This document shows positions 138-21,330 of a stretch of 21,330 nt of DNA, piece after piece. The notes beneath the pieces were generated by a model. That model saw nothing but the letters and a program-made list of their open reading frames with translations. It did not search any database and had not been told where the DNA came from. The first letter of the stretch is position 1, and every line of letters begins with the position of its first letter. Source of the DNA: Amoeboradix gromovi X-113 (taxonomy: Eukaryota; Fungi; Sanchytriomycota); NCBI GenBank assembly GCA_018985225.1, contig JADGIF010000094.1, positions 1-21,330 of the forward strand, given 5' to 3'. The position numbers were made by a program, and so were the translations under genes.

Positions 138-308
138 ATTATGATAAATGAAACAATATTTCTGAAAGGCTATTCAGTGTGCTTCGAGAAACACGTATTA
201 CTGTGCAAGGCAAAGAGCAATTAGCTTGGTTTGAATATGCTCAAGGTAAAAGGATCAAAACAGGATACCATGTATGCGCAAAGTATCAAAATATTAATTA
301 CGGTTACC

Positions 309-786
309 GAATGATTTAAATCAACCATTTATTATTGTGCTTATATGTCTTACATCTATCGATAAATCTCTAAAGATTTTCGCAATAAATTTCAATACTA
401 TATTCATTCCTTTCATATCTGAAAAATGGCTCCAAATAATCAGAGCCAGAATGCTACAAGTCTAAAGACATATAGCGATGTTATTTGCAGCCATTGACAT
501 TCAAAAATGGTGGAAAATGTTTAACGCATAAAAGGAAAAGACAATAGTAGGCCGTAATGAAGAATTTATTCGCCAAACGTGCTGAAGTTGTGGCACTCTG
601 ACGAAAACAAAGTTAGAGGCATAAATAACTACAAACCGTCATTTACAAGTTAATAGAGTCCCTAGGTCAGCAAGGAACAGCCTCAGGTTTGTGGAAACAT
701 GGTCAAGCGCGGTAATTGACGGATATGCATTGTAAGCTCCTCCATAGATATTCTCGATTTTCCAACAAACCCGACCATTAATGAGG
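309..786 (+). mobile_element. Degenerate non-autonomous Fanzor2/IS607-TnpB-like element, copy C
   Basis: ~535-680 translates as EKTIVGRNEEFIRQTC*SCGTLTKTKLEA*ITTNRHLQVNRVPRSARNS, colinear with copy A (GKTMVECNESFTSQTCTRCGILKKTNLET*TCTNCHLKIDRDHMAARNI). ~310-415 aligns with the reverse complement of 12170-12296. 682-786 aligns with the conserved 3' segment and ends TTAATGAGG. Left boundary approximate. Confidence 0.8.
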
Positions 787-800
787 ATATTTTGCTACGC

Positions 801-3800
801 ATGGAGAAGAAACGAAAGAACTGTCATGCTGTTCTAAGTGCCAAGTTTAGTAAAAAGCAACACACGCAATCTCAGTTGTACGAACTACCAGTAGAACATG
901 CTCGTAAAATAATTAAAGACAGAGCGGACATGAAGGATAAGAAGTTCGCCAGTGAACAAACCGCTTATCTGCAAGCACTCAAGTATATGCCTCATGCTAT
1001 AATGAAGCTATGGGAGACTATTCCCATGCCATGGGAGAACCAAAAGCAAGTAAAAGCTATATACCACGTGAATGGTGCCTTGACAATGGTTAATGAAATA
1101 CATAAAGTAGCTCCACCAGTTTTCATGGCACAGTGGGGTTGTATGTGGGTTGCTATGAGACGTGAAAAAAGAGACAGAAAGCATTTTAAGCGTATCAGAT
1201 TCCCTTGCTTTGATGATGAAGAGCCAATTGTAAATTTTAGTGAAAACATCATGGACGTTGATCCCTTAGAAGCTGTTCAATTAGACTTGGATGATCAGGA
1301 AGATGAATCTGTCATAGACTGGATTTATGAGCCAGATTGTCCCATGACTAGTGGAAATCACTATCGATTTGACGCCAATACTTTAAGCACTTTGTATCGA
1401 TTAGCATCTCCATTAACCACGGATATATATGACTTGAACTATTATTATCTATTTAATGACAAATCTTTTCTCACTAGTAAAGCTTTAAATGTTTCTGTCC
1501 CGAGTGGTCCCAAATTTGAACCATTGTATCCAGATTTATTAAAAGAGGCAATTAATGAAGACTGGAACGAGTTTAATGACTTGAAGCGCGTCCTAATACG
1601 ACACCCTATCCGTGAGGAATATAAAATTGCGTTTCCACACTTATACAACCAGATTCCCAAAAGTGTTGAAGTCGATGTGTACCATTACCCAGTGAATTTA
1701 TTTAATAATGAAGCAATTGAAGACGGATTTGTATTTGACAACAGCTTTAACCCTATCAATACTCGTGATTTGCGAGATCCCTGGGACGAGGATATACTTT
1801 TAAATGAGTTTGATGATTTTTCTGATAATGAAATTGAATGGGATACATATCCTTTCCTAAGCGAATATGAGTTATACTCTGATAATACTAACAATGGACT
1901 CTCACTTTACCATGCGCCATGGCCATTCACATGCAGAGGTAACTTGTCAAGACCACAAGATGTTCCTGTGATAAAGAACTGGTATTTGCAGCGGTGTCCG
2001 CCTAATCAACAAGTTAAGACACGTGTATCGTATCAAAAGCTTCTAAAAAACCATGTCAAGAATCAGCTAAAGCGCAAAACTATTCTTCATAACAAAAAGC
2101 AAATCAAAGCGCATGTACTTCGAAACACAAAGTACTTTCAGCAAACCAGAATGGATTGGATAGAAGCAGGCACCCAGCTGTTGCAGCAGGGCCACAATAT
2201 GCTGAACATATTGATAGAGCGAAAAGAGTTGCAATACCTAAATTTAGATTACAACTTCAATTTAAAGCCAATAAAAGCTATGTCAACGAAAGAACGAAAG
2301 AGAAGTAGGTTTGGAAATGCTTTTCATTTAATTAGAGAAATGCTTAAACTCACAAAACTAATTGTTGACGCTCATATTCAATTTAGATTGGGTAACTGTG
2401 ACGCATATCAGCTTGCGGATGGTATTCAATATATATTCAGCCATGTTGGTCATTTAACGGGTATTTACAGGTACAAATATAAGATAATGAAGCAGATAAG
2501 GCTTTGTAAAGATTTAAAGCATCTGATCTACCACAGGTTCAATAATGGACCTGTAGGAAAAGGACCTGGATGCGGATTTTGGCTACCTATGTGGAGAGTC
2601 TGGATTAATTTCAGCAGGGGCATTACACCTCTGTTGGAAAGATGGCTGGGTAATATCTTAAGTAGACATTTTGAAGGCAGACAGAACAATAAAGGTGCGC
2701 TTACCGTTAGCAAACAACGAATAGAGGCGCAGTATGACTTGGAATTAAGGGCGTCAGTATTGAATGATCTGGTTGATATGATGCCACATGGCGTTAAACA
2801 AAAGAAAACTAAAATCATATTACAGCATTTGTCTGAGGCATGGAGGTGTTACAAAGCTGACATAGTATGGGATGTCAAAGGTATGCCTGTCCCTATAACC
2901 AATGTAATCAATAAGTACATCAAACTTAAGGCGGAATGGTGGATATCAACTACTGAGCAAGTTAGGAATAGAATAGCAAAAGGTGCAACTTGCGATAAAA
3001 CTGTTGTGGTAAAAAATCTCGGCAGGCTTACCAGATTATATTTAAAACAGGAGAATAAGAGGCAAACACAATACTTGCAAAACGGTCCTTATATGACAGT
3101 GAATGAAGGTATTAAATGTTATGAATGTATGGTAGACTGGCTGGATGCTACCAAGTTTAACCCAATACCATTTCCGCCTCTTAATTACAAGCACGATTCA
3201 AAATTGCTGGTTCTCGGTTTAGAAAAGCTGAGAGAGGCTTATAACGTCAAAAGTAGATTAAATCAGCAACAGAGGGAAGAGGTTGCATTAATCGAAGATG
3301 CCTACGATAATCCCAATGATGCTTTAACTAGAATCAAGAGATTGTTGTTGACTCAAAGAACGTTCAAATCAGTGGGAATTGAATTTTTAGATCTTTACTC
3401 TTCTATCACGCCCATGTATGATGTGGATCCACTAGAAAAGATAACAGATGTATGGCTGGATCAGTATTTATGGTATGAAGCGGATAAAAGGCAACTATTT
3501 CCAAACTTCATCAAGCCAAATGACAACGAACCACAGCCTATGCTAGTTTATAAATATTGCCAGATATTTAACGAAATTGAAGCCAACAACAACGTGGTGG
3601 TATTAAACTCCAAATTGCACAATTTTTACGAGAATATGGACTTGTCCCTTTTAAACAAGTTGTTGAGATTGATAATGGATCCTAATCTAGCTGACTATAT
3701 AACTAGTAAGAATAATATTGAGTTGTGCTACAAAGACATGTCTGTTACTAATCATGTTGGTGTAATCAGAGGACTACAGTTTAGCAGCTTTGTTGTACAG

Positions 3801-6800
3801 TACTATGGACTAATGCTTGACTTGTTGCTAGTTGGTCCTAGTAGAGCATTGGAGCTTAGGAATATGGATATCGACATGAGTAATAACAATCACCCAATTA
3901 TGCACTATATGCGTTTTATTGACCAGGTTTATGTTGTATTCAATTTGAACAGTGTTCAAACAAATGAGCTTCTAGAAAATGGTATGCTCAAATATCCTGT
4001 GAACCACCCTGATTACAACACCTACAGTAACATAAAATCATTCGGCAAACAGGACAGAATGAGATTGTTGCAAAAGGACGTTATGTTAGGGAAGTGTTGC
4101 TATTTCATGCTAAACAGCAGACTACCTGTTAGTATATGTACTATGCAATGGTCCGACACCTTTCCTTGTGTTTATAGTAGAGACAATCCTAATATTCTAT
4201 TTAACATGTGTGGATTTGACGTGCGCATACACTTCAACAGTACAGCAGACAGCAACAGCTCTAGTGATTCTAGTACGTGGCCAATTACTCGAGATTCCAT
4301 TATTATCGGACATGCAATATTAAAAGTTAGTGAGTCATCAATTAAACAGTTTTCTAATAGAATGCGACAGATATTAATGAGCAGCGGTGGCACTACTTTT
4401 CTTAAAGTTGTACAGAAATGGAACACTGCGTTGTTAGCATTGATTGTATATTATAGGGAAGCAATACTCAACACCCCGGAATTGTTGGACTTGTTGATAA
4501 AAAGCGAGAACAGGGTGCAGAATAGAATCAAAATGGGACTCAATAGCAAGATGCCTAACAGATTTCCACCAGTTGTATTCTATACCCCAAAGGAACTAGG
4601 TGGTTTGGGTATGCTGAGTATTGGTCATATTTTGATCCCTAGTAGTGATTTAAGAGGAGCTTCTACTGCTGCTACTCACTTTAGGCAAGGACTCTCCAAT
4701 TCTGTCATTCCTAATATATTCCGATATATCACGCCTTGGTATAATGAGATTACGGATTCTACTCGCGTTTGGACAGAGTACGCTGTCAAAAGACAAGATG
4801 CCAAACTCCAGAATAGAAGAATAACTTTGGATGAGCTGCAAGACTTGTTTAATAGAGGTATTCCTCGTATCAACACTTTGTTCCAAAAAGACAGACACGT
4901 TCTTGGCTATGATCGTGGCTATAGAATTAGATTGCTATTCAAACAGTACAGTATATTGCGTGTCAATCCTTTCAACTGGACGGATACTAAGCATGATGGC
5001 AAGTTATGGAATATACTGAACTATAGAACTGACATGATTGAAGCATTGGGTGGGGTTCAGGTGATTTTAGAGCATACTTTGTACAAGGCCACCAGATTTA
5101 CAAACTACGAGGGTCTTTTTTGGGAGAAGTCTTCAGGATTTGAAGAATCCATGAAGGGCAAGAAATTAACAAATGCTCAACGAAGTGGTTTAAATCAAAT
5201 CCCTAACAGAAGATTCACGTTATGGTGGAGTCCTACTATCAACAGATCGCAAGTGTACATTGGATATTTAGTGCAGTTAGATTTGACGGGTATTCATATG
5301 ACGGGCAAAATACCGAATTTAAAGATTAGCTACATTCAGATATTTAGAGGGCATCTGTGGCAAAAGATTCATGAGTCCCTTGTGATGGATATATGCCAGG
5401 TACTCGACATGGAAATGGAATCGCTGGACATTGCTACAGTTACAAAGGAGACTTTGCATCCTCGCAAGTCGTATAAAATGAACAGCAGCTGTGCTGATAT
5501 ATCTATGACCAGCAACTATGAGTTCAATTGTACCGCGCCATGTTATATTACAGACTCAACCCCTTCAATTTCTAATATCAAGTCAAAGGTACTATGGGTT
5601 GATGTTCAACTTAGATGGGGTGACTATGATATGAGTGATATCAATAGATATTGTAGAACAAAGTATCTGGACTACTCTACTGATAACATGAGTATATACC
5701 CCAGTAATACTGGTTTGATGGTTTGCATTGACTTGTGTTATAACACATGGTCTGTTTATGGTAACTGGATACCTGGAATGCAGGTACTGATGAATACAGC
5801 CATGCAAACTATCATCAAGCATAATCCTGCGCTATTTGTGCTCCAGGAGCGAATACGTAAAGCTCTGCAGCTATACAATACAACTAGTACTGATGACTTG
5901 CTAAATGCTCAAAATTATACTGATTTGTTCAATAACAAAACATGGTTTTTGGACGATACAAATGTCTATCGTGTTAACATTCATAAATCTAGTAACGGTT
6001 CAATGACTACAAAGCCAATTAACGGTGCATTGGCCATTATCAATCCAATAAATGGTCAGCTTTATCTGGGCATATTTCATTCTAGTACCTGGCATAATCA
6101 GCCTCGTGTAGGTCAATTAAGCAAGTGGAAGGTTGCAGAGTGTGTGTCTGCATTAATCAAGTCATTGCCAATAAAAGACCAACCTCAGCAGTTAATAGTC
6201 ACAAGAAAGGGAATGCTGGACGCATTGGAAGTACATTTATTAGATTTTCCAAACATCACAATTAAAGGCACCCTGCTACAGCTGCCATTTCATTCGTTCA
6301 CCAAGCTAAGTATATTGAATGACACGATAATGAACGCAAGCAAGGATCAGCTGCTTCTGTTCAACACGTATGATGACTGGATGACTACAATGAGTCCATA
6401 TACATGCTTCAGCAGATTAATACTGATATTGCGCGCAATGCATGTGAATACCACACAAACTATAAGTATATTGAATACAGCAACAGATAATACAACAAAG
6501 ACACTCGCCAACTCATTGTTTCCTTTGCATTCTACTGACGAATGGATAGAATTGGAAGTAAAGCTAAAGGAGCTAATAATAGAGGACTATGGTCTAAAGA
6601 ATGCTATAAACACCAAAGCACTGACTCAGACAGAAATAAGAGATATAATTCTAGGAAGCACAGTCATAAATCCTAGTATTCAACGGCAGGAAATGGTAAG
6701 CAATGCGGATACACAAGTACAGGCACTCGCAGTTAAAACATTTAATGTGCATGGCGAGGAGATGATTGCAGTAACTACAAGCAAGTATGAACAGGAGCAG

Positions 6801-7421
6801 TTTAACAGTAAAGCAGATTGGAGGAGCAGGATGAATGCCAGCATCGGGTTGATTAAGAGAAGTGAGTATTGTATAGTGACACCGCTAGATGAGCAGAAAG
6901 ATGGGCAAAAGCTGTCTATTCCACGTAAATTAGTGCAGCAGTTTATAAGGATATCAGATATAAAGACAAGAATAATAGGATTGATGTATGGGGAGAGTAA
7001 CGTAGAGTTCATTGTCATGGTACCGCAATACGGGAACAACAAGCATTTAGAATTGAGCATCACAAGCTTAGAGATGAGTAAACCTTTTATTGGTATAATA
7101 ACAACGATATTCAATGAACCAATGGATGTGAAAGAACAGATTGCAGAAATAACAGGATCACAGGATTACAAAGTGGTAGAAATCAAGTATATACAAGGAG
7201 GGATAGAGTTGTCAAGCAAGAGCGAAATAGAGCTGAACGATTTAGATGGATATTATATGGTGCCAATGGATAGCATCTGGCATTACAACTTCAATGGGAG
7301 CATGCATAGAAAAGAACACAAGTATGGATTAAAGATTGATGTGCCGATGGGATTTTATGACGGAAACCATAGAAGGATACACTTCAGTGGATTTGATAAG
7401 ATGGAGACAGTAGAGGACTAA
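801..7421 (+). CDS. PRP8: Pre-mRNA splicing factor Prp8 (U5 snRNP), apparently intronless, no intein
   Basis: Hallmark motifs: ALKYMPHA, MRREKRDRKHFKR, GPVGKGPGCGFW, GLNSKMPNRFPPVVFYTPKELGGLGML, KKLTNAQRSGLNQIPNRRFTLWWSPTINR, HPRKSYKMNSSCAD. First ATG is at 801 (the ORF track starts at TTG 792). Confidence 0.98.
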   Translation: MEKKRKNCHAVLSAKFSKKQHTQSQLYELPVEHARKIIKDRADMKDKKFASEQTAYLQALKYMPHAIMKLWETIPMPWENQKQVKAIYHVNGALTMVNEIHKVAPPVFMAQWGCMWVAMRREKRDRKHFKRIRFPCFDDEEPIVNFSENIMDVDPLEAVQLDLDDQEDESVIDWIYEPDCPMTSGNHYRFDANTLSTLYRLASPLTTDIYDLNYYYLFNDKSFLTSKALNVSVPSGPKFEPLYPDLLKEAINEDWNEFNDLKRVLIRHPIREEYKIAFPHLYNQIPKSVEVDVYHYPVNLFNNEAIEDGFVFDNSFNPINTRDLRDPWDEDILLNEFDDFSDNEIEWDTYPFLSEYELYSDNTNNGLSLYHAPWPFTCRGNLSRPQDVPVIKNWYLQRCPPNQQVKTRVSYQKLLKNHVKNQLKRKTILHNKKQIKAHVLRNTKYFQQTRMDWIEAGTQLLQQGHNMLNILIERKELQYLNLDYNFNLKPIKAMSTKERKRSRFGNAFHLIREMLKLTKLIVDAHIQFRLGNCDAYQLADGIQYIFSHVGHLTGIYRYKYKIMKQIRLCKDLKHLIYHRFNNGPVGKGPGCGFWLPMWRVWINFSRGITPLLERWLGNILSRHFEGRQNNKGALTVSKQRIEAQYDLELRASVLNDLVDMMPHGVKQKKTKIILQHLSEAWRCYKADIVWDVKGMPVPITNVINKYIKLKAEWWISTTEQVRNRIAKGATCDKTVVVKNLGRLTRLYLKQENKRQTQYLQNGPYMTVNEGIKCYECMVDWLDATKFNPIPFPPLNYKHDSKLLVLGLEKLREAYNVKSRLNQQQREEVALIEDAYDNPNDALTRIKRLLLTQRTFKSVGIEFLDLYSSITPMYDVDPLEKITDVWLDQYLWYEADKRQLFPNFIKPNDNEPQPMLVYKYCQIFNEIEANNNVVVLNSKLHNFYENMDLSLLNKLLRLIMDPNLADYITSKNNIELCYKDMSVTNHVGVIRGLQFSSFVVQYYGLMLDLLLVGPSRALELRNMDIDMSNNNHPIMHYMRFIDQVYVVFNLNSVQTNELLENGMLKYPVNHPDYNTYSNIKSFGKQDRMRLLQKDVMLGKCCYFMLNSRLPVSICTMQWSDTFPCVYSRDNPNILFNMCGFDVRIHFNSTADSNSSSDSSTWPITRDSIIIGHAILKVSESSIKQFSNRMRQILMSSGGTTFLKVVQKWNTALLALIVYYREAILNTPELLDLLIKSENRVQNRIKMGLNSKMPNRFPPVVFYTPKELGGLGMLSIGHILIPSSDLRGASTAATHFRQGLSNSVIPNIFRYITPWYNEITDSTRVWTEYAVKRQDAKLQNRRITLDELQDLFNRGIPRINTLFQKDRHVLGYDRGYRIRLLFKQYSILRVNPFNWTDTKHDGKLWNILNYRTDMIEALGGVQVILEHTLYKATRFTNYEGLFWEKSSGFEESMKGKKLTNAQRSGLNQIPNRRFTLWWSPTINRSQVYIGYLVQLDLTGIHMTGKIPNLKISYIQIFRGHLWQKIHESLVMDICQVLDMEMESLDIATVTKETLHPRKSYKMNSSCADISMTSNYEFNCTAPCYITDSTPSISNIKSKVLWVDVQLRWGDYDMSDINRYCRTKYLDYSTDNMSIYPSNTGLMVCIDLCYNTWSVYGNWIPGMQVLMNTAMQTIIKHNPALFVLQERIRKALQLYNTTSTDDLLNAQNYTDLFNNKTWFLDDTNVYRVNIHKSSNGSMTTKPINGALAIINPINGQLYLGIFHSSTWHNQPRVGQLSKWKVAECVSALIKSLPIKDQPQQLIVTRKGMLDALEVHLLDFPNITIKGTLLQLPFHSFTKLSILNDTIMNASKDQLLLFNTYDDWMTTMSPYTCFSRLILILRAMHVNTTQTISILNTATDNTTKTLANSLFPLHSTDEWIELEVKLKELIIEDYGLKNAINTKALTQTEIRDIILGSTVINPSIQRQEMVSNADTQVQALAVKTFNVHGEEMIAVTTSKYEQEQFNSKADWRSRMNASIGLIKRSEYCIVTPLDEQKDGQKLSIPRKLVQQFIRISDIKTRIIGLMYGESNVEFIVMVPQYGNNKHLELSITSLEMSKPFIGIITTIFNEPMDVKEQIAEITGSQDYKVVEIKYIQGGIELSSKSEIELNDLDGYYMVPMDSIWHYNFNGSMHRKEHKYGLKIDVPMGFYDGNHRRIHFSGFDKMETVED

Positions 7422-11109: not shown

Positions 11110-11339
11110 TGTTAAAACAAGTGGGACTTGCTTAATGAAAAGAAGACTTTGGAGTAAAAGGAGATGACAAGAAGAAAATACGAGTTTTACATGACTAAAA
11201 CCCCATTAAAACGTGTTTAAACCGTTGAAGATTTATAATGTCAAATGTTTTGAAATTGCATTTGCAAAATAATAATAAATTCTTCGGCCCAAAATAAAGT
11301 TGTGCAACTCTCCTGCCACACCTGGTATGGAAGCCAAGC

Positions 11340-11715
11340 GCTTATTTCAGTATTAAAAGTATCCTCAGGAGCACCATCAATAATGAAGCGACTATTGAGA
11401 AGCTCACTGAAGCAGCTCTACTCACAAACAGAATCATGACTCACAGTTTGAACCTCCTGAAGCTACAGTTGCTCCATTACCCTGAAGCTAGAGATGCTCT
11501 ATCCGCCAACAACGAGCTTAGATAAAAGCAATCAAAGCTGATAAAGATACCTCAGAGCACAATAATCAAAAATTAGCTTTGTGTCGCGAGCTTCGCAAGG
11601 TGAAGAATAGCATCCTCGGTATTAACGACAAAAGACATCAGACGTGCAGTGCCCTGTCTGGATCGATACTGAAAGGGTCAAGATCATGCCGCACTCAAAT
11701 GCTTGTTACCAACTC
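11340..11715 (+). pseudogene. Decayed Fanzor1-like gene, N-terminal region
   Basis: Segments in shifting frames: AYFSIKSILRSTINNEATIEKLTEAALLTNRIMTHSLNLLKLQLLHY; KLALCRELRKVKNSILGI; VWIDTERVKIMPHSNACYQL. Order and pattern resemble the N-terminal half of Fanzor1 proteins as I recall them (LKSIL...NKIVIHTLQFLKLYLL; LCxxLRKIKxDIL; WIxxxxxxIxP...YYDL). Contains a stop, a frameshift and an apparent internal deletion. Confidence 0.6.
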
Positions 11716-11817
11716 CTCGTTAAAAGTCCAGATTTCCGAGAAAATTGAGAATTTCCACAGAGAAACTAATGCTAGATGCTCCGTTACAGTGATCGCTCAC
11801 GCTTTCACTACCCTGAG
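11716..11817 (-). ncRNA. Candidate omegaRNA scaffold of the Fanzor2-like element (copy A)
   Basis: Lies directly 3' of the RuvC-III motif and is conserved in copies B and C. Stems: TAGTGA/TCACTG enclosing GC-GTGA-GC, GTTTC/GAAAT, CTCG/CGAG. Homology ends sharply at the element end. Confidence 0.65.
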
Positions 11818-12142
11818 ACGGGATTAAATAAGGATACATGTATTTGATGTATATGTTCCTTGCTGCCATATGGTCTCTATCTATCTTCAAATGACAATTT
11901 GTACAGGTTCAGGTTTCTAAATTGGTTTTCTTTAGAATACCACACCTTGTACATGTCTGACTAGTAAATGATTCATTGCATTCGACCATCGTCTTTCCTC
12001 TTTGCTTATACTTGAACTTCAAGCGTTCCTTGAATGCGTAATGGGACATTGTAGCCATGTTTCCTGCGACCTTGCTCGACAAGCTACTTAGCATCTGGCT
12101 CGTATTGAACGAGGGTAAGTATATCAGATCATATGTCTTTGT
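11720..12142 (-). pseudogene. Fanzor2/TnpB C-terminal fragment (RuvC-II region, zinc finger, RuvC-III) with an in-frame TGA
   Basis: TKTYDLIYLPSFNTSQML...SHYAFKERLKFK...VECNESFTSQTCTRCG...LET*TCTNCHLKIDRDHMAARNIY. Shows CxxC...CxxC, DRDxxAARNI, and the Fanzor-type Glu (NESFTS) just before the zinc finger. RuvC-I is absent. Stop at 11909-11911. Confidence 0.9.
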
Positions 12143-12445
12143 ATGCTGTACCTGTTAGTTATTTCTTTAGAATTGATTTACCATTTGCGAAAAGGAAGAA
12201 TATAAAGTATTTAAGCTATTAGAAAATCTGAAAAAGTCTTGAAATTATACAAAAATGCATACAAATTCGCGATAAATGATTTATTCAAGAAAATTCAATA
12301 GCTGCTGAAAAGGGTCCAGGTTTCGAGATCCTGAATAATCTTCGATTCTAAGGAAATCGGTAATATATACAGAATGCACTCTTCCTCGGAACCTATACGT
12401 TGTCTCTAAACATCAGCAAAGAGATTTCTATACAATTAACATTTT

Positions 12446-12612
12446 ATGGAGATTGCGACCACGTGGCAGCAAGGAACACGTACTTATATGCACCACTATT
12501 TGATACCTTATCAGGGAGTGGAAGCGTGAGACACCGCAGTAACAGAGCTACTGTCTTTGTTAGTTTCCTTTGGAAATTCTTAATTTCCTCGGCAGGAAGG
12601 ACTCTTAACGAG
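12446..12612 (+). mobile_element. 3'-end fragment of the Fanzor2-like element, copy B (RuvC-III remnant plus candidate omegaRNA 12511-12612)
   Basis: DCDHVAARNTY at 12451-12483 (GGCAGCAAGGAACA identical to copy A). TCAGGGAGTGGAAGCGTGAG...TTAGTTTCCTTTGGAAATTCTTAATTTCCTCGG...GGACTCTTAACGAG aligns with copy A in inverted orientation. Confidence 0.85.
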
Positions 12613-12757
12613 AATGAAGTATTAAATGACTCAAGCGCGCATATTTTAACTCAAAGTAACTAGTAATTGAAGGCTAGTTGATGATTCAAATTAGTGCAAG
12701 TCTCACAATAAATTTAATAAGCGCTCGTGGCTTAACCCTTAAGTTTTACAATTTCTT

Positions 12758-16059: not shown

Positions 16060-16228
16060 GTTTTAAAATACATTTGGGACATCAAATATAAAAACTAGAC
16101 TAACTTTCTGAAATAGTTTGAATCATTATTTCAAGTGTGTATTAACCGATACATTAAATTAGTCTGACTGGTTCAAAAGTAAATTATTTTAGTGTAAAAG
16201 CTTTTCATCTATCAAAATCTTAGATACA

Positions 16229-16402
16229 ATGATTAATAAGAAGAGAAAACAAAAAATAAGTTATACGAAGAAAAAGAAAAAGAAAGAAAAAGGAACAGAT
16301 AAAGAGTATCGTCTAAGAAAATGCACCTTTTGCTTAGGCATTCAAAGACCTCATATATTTGAAAGAGATAGTGGGTCATTCTGTTTTATTTTAAAGAGGT
16401 GA
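16229..16402 (+). pseudogene. 57-aa collapsed Fanzor1-like mini-ORF inside the TIR element
   Basis: MINKKRKQKISYTKKKKKKEKGTDKEYRLRKCTFCLGIQRPHIFERDSGSFCFILKR*. A basic tract, then RLRKCxxC, then GxxRPxxFxR, resembling the Fanzor1 extreme C-terminus with the intervening NRDxNAAxNI motif missing. Confidence 0.5.
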
Positions 16403-16503
16403 ATGACATTAATGAAAGAAGGACTTTTATTAATAATAGTATTTCCTCCTTATGGAGCACCTACTTTAAAAACGACTTGGTCTAGTTTTTATATTTGGTG
16501 TCC
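16389..16503 (+). ncRNA. Candidate structured RNA (omegaRNA-like) at the right end of the TIR element
   Basis: Outer stem TTTTAAAG(16389-96)/CTTTAAAA(16464-71). Hairpin ATTAATGAAAG(16408-18)/CTTTTATTAAT(16424-34). GAGG/CCTC pairing. The same stems occur in copy 1 with a longer loop. Confidence 0.55.
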
Positions 16504-21098: not shown

Positions 21099-21108
21099 TT
21101 AAACAATT

Positions 21109-21330
21109 GGGACATCAAATATAAAAACTGGACTAACTTTCAGTAACAACTTGGAACATTATTTCGGCTTTATTAATTTTATGGATTTAAGAAGCGAGTG
21201 GACATTCAGCTAGTTGCGGAGTTGACGAGTATAAAAGGAAATAAATAACTTTTTGTGTCGAAATTTAAAAAATAAATATTCTGTACAGCTAGTCTCTTAC
21301 TCATCCAATCTTTATTTCAAATAAAATATC
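21109..21330 (+). mobile_element. Left end of GGGAC-TIR element, copy 3 (no right end seen before the window end)
   Basis: GGGACATCAAATATAAAAACTGGACTAACTTTC...CATTATTTC...TATTAA aligns with 16076-16145. Confidence 0.85.

Follow-up and report, generated by a model that had tools for sequence, protein, structure and literature searches.

The 21,330-nt stretch of DNA analysed here (the window) contains three related fragments, A, B and C, and raises the question of whether these are dispersed guide-RNA donors for an intact Fanzor2 nuclease encoded elsewhere in the genome, as the original prediction proposed, or the remains of a transposon. Taken as a whole, they are likely to be MITE-like internal-deletion derivatives of an IS607EU TnpA/Fanzor2 transposon, mobilised by their parents and now relics; we observe the corresponding anatomy, ends and copy number, selection on the protein and RNA of the parents, and neutral decay of the copies. 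The window is gene-dense and eukaryotic, with Prp8 (792-7421), a CSC1/RSN1-type channel and a Skp1_POZ-domain elongin C-like gene, and comes from the sanchytrid fungus Amoeboradix gromovi, whose assembly used here comprises 10.5 Mb in 1319 contigs (1167 in the published description, for DNA sequenced after whole-genome amplification; PMC8371127). Pairwise alignments confirm that the RuvC-III remnant and some 100 nt of 3' sequence are common to the three copies (A aligns with B over 170 nt at 72% identity, E 1e-19, and with C over 144 nt at 71%, E 5e-13), and a profile of full-length copies matches A, B and C and nothing else in the window. Instead of a family of three, about 500 copies are present in the genome: when up to three mismatches were allowed, pattern counts recorded the right end of this family (family A) 521 times, its left end 408 times and its RuvC-III motif 482 times, against zero for each reversed control. 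A genome search returned 825 candidates, the best 39 other copies being at 90-94% identity, and by our own estimate the family occupies roughly 2-3% of the genome. Anatomy, ends and counts all support the proposed origin of these non-autonomous copies from an IS607/Fanzor2 element.

That such a family could result from contamination or faulty assembly is extremely improbable. The source was an alga-parasite culture, amplified DNA was assembled with SPAdes (PMC8371127), the haplotypes described below are strongly mosaic, and the join between A and B is unspanned among the Logan contigs listed. Against this, the copies have hundreds of unique flanks and lie beside eukaryotic genes (Prp8 and the Skp1_POZ-domain elongin C-like gene), an 11.6-kb Logan contig passes the right end of A without differences, by 27 nt only, and identical ends occur in an unrelated metagenome. 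For the family as such, an artefact is refuted by the unique flanks, the eukaryotic genes and the metagenomic relatives; the host is eukaryotic, as indicated by the Prp8 flank and by the presence of its proteins in EukProt.

Copy A (11713..12304, minus strand; nhmmer 694 bits) is complete: it is a non-autonomous deletion derivative of an IS607/Fanzor2 element, 592 bp long, with ends set from 30-47 aligned copies; loose ends of Logan contigs fall at 11713 (47 contigs) and at 12293/4. It consists of the left ~160 bp of the element, with the left end and the first TnpA codons, joined to the last 140 Fanzor2 codons. The left part (12143..12301, minus strand), recognised by matches to sister copies, carries the 5' remnant of an IS607 serine recombinase with its ATG at 12184 and the start of the HTH, and the longer sisters L053 and L054 match the HTH of the intact TnpA of a metagenomic relative, L068, with E 2e-14. 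The TnpA/Fanzor2 deletion junction, located by junction comparison at 12140..12142 (minus strand), has a 3-bp microhomology, ACA, and is present in 29 of the 30 top copies; within the family as a whole the internal breakpoints vary and many differ from that of copy A. The C-terminal Fanzor2 remnant (11720..12142, minus strand) includes the zinc finger and was identified by motif comparison and by the placement that had been anticipated from an HMM search, in the TnpB zinc-finger families PF07282 (E 4e-10) and NF040570 (E 5e-8). Its motifs, NESFTSQTC...DRD, correspond to the alternative catalytic Glu (11974-11972), six residues before the C4 finger, followed by the RuvC-III Asp (11875-11873), the alternative Glu and zinc-finger criterion for Fanzor2 being that of PMC10711439. 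A premature TGA lies at 11911-11909 and the natural stop at 11722-11720, all on the minus strand. The ~100-nt 3' part is indeed shared, as claimed, but it is also coding, since the Fanzor2 frame crosses into it, traverses the entire RNA scaffold and stops 7 nt short of the element end. The DPG of RuvC-I occurs in L050, a fragment of a family-A parent, and in P0001, P0123 and P0125, and this region is deleted in the window copies.

The two other copies are older. Copy B (12305..12615, plus strand), delimited with the full-length-copy profile, lacks its left end and abuts the left end of A; its terminal AG has decayed to AT. A probable TnpA HTH remnant at about 12347-12436 is joined straight to RuvC-III in this copy, the HTH match being weak (E 0.02) and borderline against shuffles. 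The single close copy of B (87-90%) is found on contig C1073, and an insertion of A into B with both halves of B kept was rejected, the far flank being unlike this C1073 copy. Copy C (301..788, plus strand) is an old complete derivative according to the same profile, with a left-end score of 106 against a shuffled maximum of 85.5, and is composed of the left end, a TnpA HTH remnant (419-517), a zinc finger/RuvC-III remnant and a scaffold with a 34-nt deletion. It terminates 12 nt upstream of the Prp8 ATG at 801 (window 788-801) and thus sits in the promoter region of a gene that is essential.

The sharp homology boundary expected on the right side is borne out in 47 right ends, but homology does not stop at TTAACGAG: it reaches TTAACGAG-GAG, 3 nt further, with G at +1 in 33, A at +2 in 42 and G at +3 in 40 of these ends, and is variable beyond. 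Because conservation continues through GAG, the elements end at 11713 (A), 12615 (B) and 788 (C), and the guides quoted earlier begin 3 nt early. On the left, the junction is CAG (C in 32/33, A in 28/33 and G in 32/33 copies), with a purine bias directly upstream (27/33, p=3e-4), and the same CAG is found in the metagenomic loci L067 and L068. Flanks are variable outside C-AG and G-AG, with AG at both junctions (C-AG-element-G-AG). The comparison of ends in family A identified neither TIRs nor a TSD, just one 8-bp subterminal inverted match, in agreement with the absence of TIRs noted originally. The recombination at GG supposed at the same time was not supported, and a GG crossover core was rejected on the ends of family A and of L067/L068, which give AG, and on those of a sister family, Y, which give CG; GG is typical of most IS607EU members without being universal (PMC13565253). 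Recombination of IS607 elements uses a 2-bp core, and the target motif doubles as the TAM (PMC6188088; 10.1101/2023.11.20.567912), and the core flanking the right end counts as part of the scaffold (PMC10711439). From these published rules and the family-A ends, we infer an AG crossover core and a predicted CAG TAM, which in copy A would correspond to the left junction C-AG at 12302..12304 (minus strand, left-end alignment), and a guide starting at 11712. The predicted guide of copy A is accordingly the first 15-20 nt of flanking DNA (11693..11712, minus strand), as suggested by the boundary and PMC10711439. Homologues of an empty site were not found, and neither a circle (RE-LE) joint nor a clean skip was seen among 15/30 Logan joints, so the evidence for the AG core consists of the two ends together with the CG ends of the sister family. 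An empty site deduced from L051, inserted in a family-Y element, was rejected as too diverged.

An omegaRNA-type scaffold at the right end of the element is supported, with changes in its pairing partners. The predicted core of copy A (11713..11822, minus strand, terminal AG at 11714-11713; folding and covariation) would comprise a small hairpin (11822-11811), three stem-loops and a pseudoknot between the hairpin loop (11818-11815) and 11718-11715. Compared with shuffles, the folds of single copies are only modestly better, with z values of -0.6 (A), -1.9 (B) and -2.7 (L002). The three-stem model gave 84% paired cells in 24 copies, better than column shuffles. The compensatory change described for the first large stem is real (AU in 12/24 and GC in 6/24 sequences), and this stem contains the only well-supported compensatory pair, in a type of test that is inflated by the kinship of the sequences; with mixed old copies, RNAalifold likewise predicted the first stem alone, and an Rfam search gave zero matches. 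The CTCG/CGAG pair thought to close the end is absent in L067/L068 and in copy C, with weak counts even in the family-A alignment, and was discarded; the covarying partner is the loop of the first hairpin. In every family, this loop is complementary to the four bases preceding the terminal core, with changing letters: CCTC-GAGG in A and C, CCTA-TAGG in L067 and L068, CTTA-TAAG in the C542 locus and TCTA-TAGG in family Y, copy B keeping 3/4 pairs. Covariation across families thus supports a pseudoknot between the first-hairpin loop and the 3' end of the predicted scaffold, in registers that were set by hand because MAFFT did not align the RNAs of the different families. Such a pseudoknot is needed in IS607 TnpB and has been predicted for Fanzor2 RNAs (PMC10711439).

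The search for intact copies called for by the original prediction gave a different picture from the one expected. DNA coding for the family-A RuvC-I is present at just four places in the genome, none in a long frame, and a cognate intact Fanzor2 for family A was not found in this fragmented assembly of amplified DNA, which is about 92% complete (PMC8371127) and could conceal an intact parent. The only open Fanzor2, on contig C542 (L049:1473-3488), is a single-copy gene of 671 aa in which the three catalytic motifs are all present; its identity with the family-A remnant is ~48-56%. It was rejected as the cognate nuclease of family A, being single-copy and having a different RNA (predicted cores of ~68 nt at its 3' side and ~110 nt in family A). 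Its first 240 nuclease codons overlap a serine-recombinase gene in another frame, whose HTH has an in-frame stop, and this locus may have lost its mobility recently, or its nuclease may have been retained. The C46 locus (L064) is no intact parent either, with stops in TnpA and truncation by the contig end. Across the genome, 12 resolvase loci overlap Fanzor2-like frames, and NF033518 scores above cut-off on C542 and C459. Decayed IS607/Fanzor2 elements from the resolvase loci form family Y (L056-L066), with a 65-nt RNA core; they start with CCG and end with TTAACGTAGG-CG (GGCG), both ends being shifted together relative to family A, and C459 in this family encodes the sole clearly intact TnpA found in the genome. 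At L050:4343-5800 (G000 C385), two Fanzor2 relics lie back to back in opposite orientation, which may reflect a real inversion or an amplification chimera.

Intact relatives were found in a metagenome (GCA_013565735.1), where the proteins P0123 and P0125 are 57-59% identical to the family-A fragment; their loci, L067 and L068, start with CAG and end with CTAGGAG. The element at L068:2957-4828 is apparently intact and autonomous, with a TnpA of 240 aa and a Fanzor2 of 604 aa whose starts are 7 nt apart. A search of viral contigs with P0123 returned nothing, and the best PDB match is the mimivirus Fanzor2 (9b0l).

The history of selection was read from 37 copies chosen by similarity to copy A. 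Within the coding remnant, changes private to one copy comprise 34 synonymous and 114 non-synonymous ones (dN/dS ~1.05), whereas those present in at least 4 copies comprise 26 and 18, respectively (dN/dS ~0.22; Fisher p=1e-5 against private changes). In the scaffold, variants common to at least 4 copies fall at unpaired positions in 7/7 cases (p=4e-4), and private changes occur at 1.08 times the coding-remnant rate at paired sites and at 1.8 times this rate at pseudoknot sites, the latter figure being for the pseudoknot of the original prediction, with the revised pair columns likewise without obvious protection. As shared variants have been purified and private ones are neutral, selection acted on the parents for both RNA and protein but does not act on the inserted copies, which points to the present-day family-A copies being decaying relics. 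Stops or frame changes are present in 30/37 copies, and the closest two are 94.4% identical. Every predicted scaffold pair is retained in 10/37.

Moreover, copies sharing one deletion junction (L001-L052) carry shuffled, synonymous-biased haplotypes, in which 81-90% of site pairs more than 30 nt apart fail the four-gamete test. This mosaicism fits gene conversion with coding parents, the alternative being assembly chimeras. A bolder reading, which we hold to be very unlikely, is that hundreds of omegaRNA cassettes are still transcribed, each targeting its own flank, with gene starts such as that of Prp8 among them, and that they serve a Fanzor2 which has survived or been domesticated and accepts foreign scaffolds; C542, with its open nuclease frame and a stop in its transposase, would be an example, and gene conversion at such breaks would account for the mosaics.

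The proposal of guide donors for an intact Fanzor2 therefore stands in one part, the retention of the scaffold, and is opposed by the missing cognate nuclease and the neutral decay. Across many independent breakpoints, ~165 nt that include the whole scaffold region remain in over 90% of the right ends. Donors expressed today, serving an unassembled cognate nuclease or C542 loaded with foreign scaffolds, are unlikely: the ~500 scaffolds, the copies with all predicted pairs, the three catalytic motifs of the open C542 frame and the activity of ghost omegaRNAs with SpuFz1 (PMC10432273) speak for them, and set against these are private mutations undepleted at paired and pseudoknot sites, the short RNA of single-copy C542 and the lack of a cognate long frame in the genome, together with zero guide targets within the ~280 kb searched, a search of low power. 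At the other extreme, the copies could be plain MITEs whose 3' 170 nt were kept for the transposase or by chance and whose scaffold never acted in trans. Neutral decay would agree with this, as would the derivatives in which parts of the scaffold are missing (joints 11765-12152 and 11768-11848 in Logan contigs) and short GACTTTT-type repeats at both ends, possibly TnpA sites; nevertheless, excision of a bacterial IS607 requires an end of only ~40-60 bp (10.1101/2023.11.20.567912), much less than the length retained here, and we consider plain MITEs improbable. That guides were supplied in trans while the family was amplifying is plausible, since the 521 right ends are accompanied by 482 RuvC-III motifs.

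For parent-mobilised deletion derivatives, the favoured reading, the parents would have encoded the overlapping serine recombinase (TnpA) and Fanzor2 nuclease, and TnpA from full-length parents would excise the short copies in trans as circles, which would insert at C-AG sites through a 2-bp crossover that leaves no TSD. Transcription of the right end would yield an omegaRNA made of the scaffold ending in GGAG and ~15-20 nt of flank; the parental Fanzor2 loaded with it (TAM CAG) would cleave the emptied donor site, and gene conversion would restore the copy. Such restorative homing, modelled in PMC13565253, would favour short copies that retain the scaffold.

Comparison with known systems places family A close to the eukaryotic IS607EU/Fanzor2 elements (ACa-1/2, ISvMimi, ApmFz2; PMC3627910, PMC10711439, PMC13565253), which likewise combine a serine recombinase with a Fanzor2 having the DPG and alternative Glu, overlapping ORFs, a right-end RNA with a pseudoknot and a 3-nt motif at the left junction, and lack TIRs and TSDs. 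It departs from them by its AG core (CG in family Y) where GG is usual, and by its abundance, with ~500 non-autonomous copies in a fungal nuclear genome of 10.5 Mb. Gilbert and Cordaux reported no evidence for IS607 transposition within eukaryote genomes (PMC3673617), and no sanchytrid Fanzor2 was reported in the literature searched; the comparative evidence here is for massive amplification of an IS607-type serine-recombinase transposon inside a eukaryotic nuclear genome, and for a core that has switched naturally between sister families (AG, CG), each time at both ends. Fanzor ghost loci resemble these copies in size (~550-600 bp) and in having both ends and an omegaRNA scaffold without a nuclease ORF; the Spu-1 ghosts of Spizellomyces punctatus number 134, 19 of them full-length, and others occur in N. 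lovaniensis and M. mercenaria (PMC10432273). Spu-1 differs in being a Fanzor1 with inverted repeats, whose cognate genes are intact and whose ghost RNAs have been shown to be active, whereas the evidence here is from sequence only and the assembly yielded no intact Fanzor cognate to family A, such as accompanies ghost loci. Bacterial IS607 elements and IS607 IStrons (PMC6188088; 10.1101/2023.11.20.567912) also have a 2-bp core at both junctions, a target motif equal to the TAM and a model of restorative homing, but with GG/TGGG in place of AG/CAG and CG/CCG, and the present elements have a eukaryotic host and no intron. TAMs ending in CG or AG, as the left junctions do here, have been measured for NlovFz2 (CCG) and MmeFz2 (TAG) (PMC10432273), while CAG is predicted.

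Ghost loci, non-GGG Fanzor2 TAMs and eukaryotic IS607 elements have thus been published (PMC10432273, PMC3627910, PMC3673617), and the departures from IS607EU/Fanzor2 ghost loci are the AG/CG cores and the density. The end of the scaffold, its pseudoknot and a predicted CAG TAM are now defined, and L068, with intact TnpA and Fanzor2 and the same ends, renders the predictions testable and might broaden the TAM range of compact nucleases. A role as guide donors would matter far more if true; the evidence currently favours relics.

Finally, two further repeats were noticed in the window. On the guide side of copy A, a dispersed decayed repeat (11216-11693) is 70-79% identical to sequences on C511, C383, C974, C994, C412 and C623. 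The peptide at 11298-11522 presumably resembles the N-termini of Fanzor1; a Fanzor1 origin was not confirmed by PDB, Atlas and protein searches with this peptide or by Pfam on neighbouring pieces. A second family of ~430 bp, with terminal inverted repeats beginning TGGGACATCAAAT, is present at 1-138, 16075-16503 and 21108-21165. A close variant of the TGGGACATCAAAT family lies beside the metagenomic Fanzor2 locus L067, which suggests that this contig comes from a related organism.
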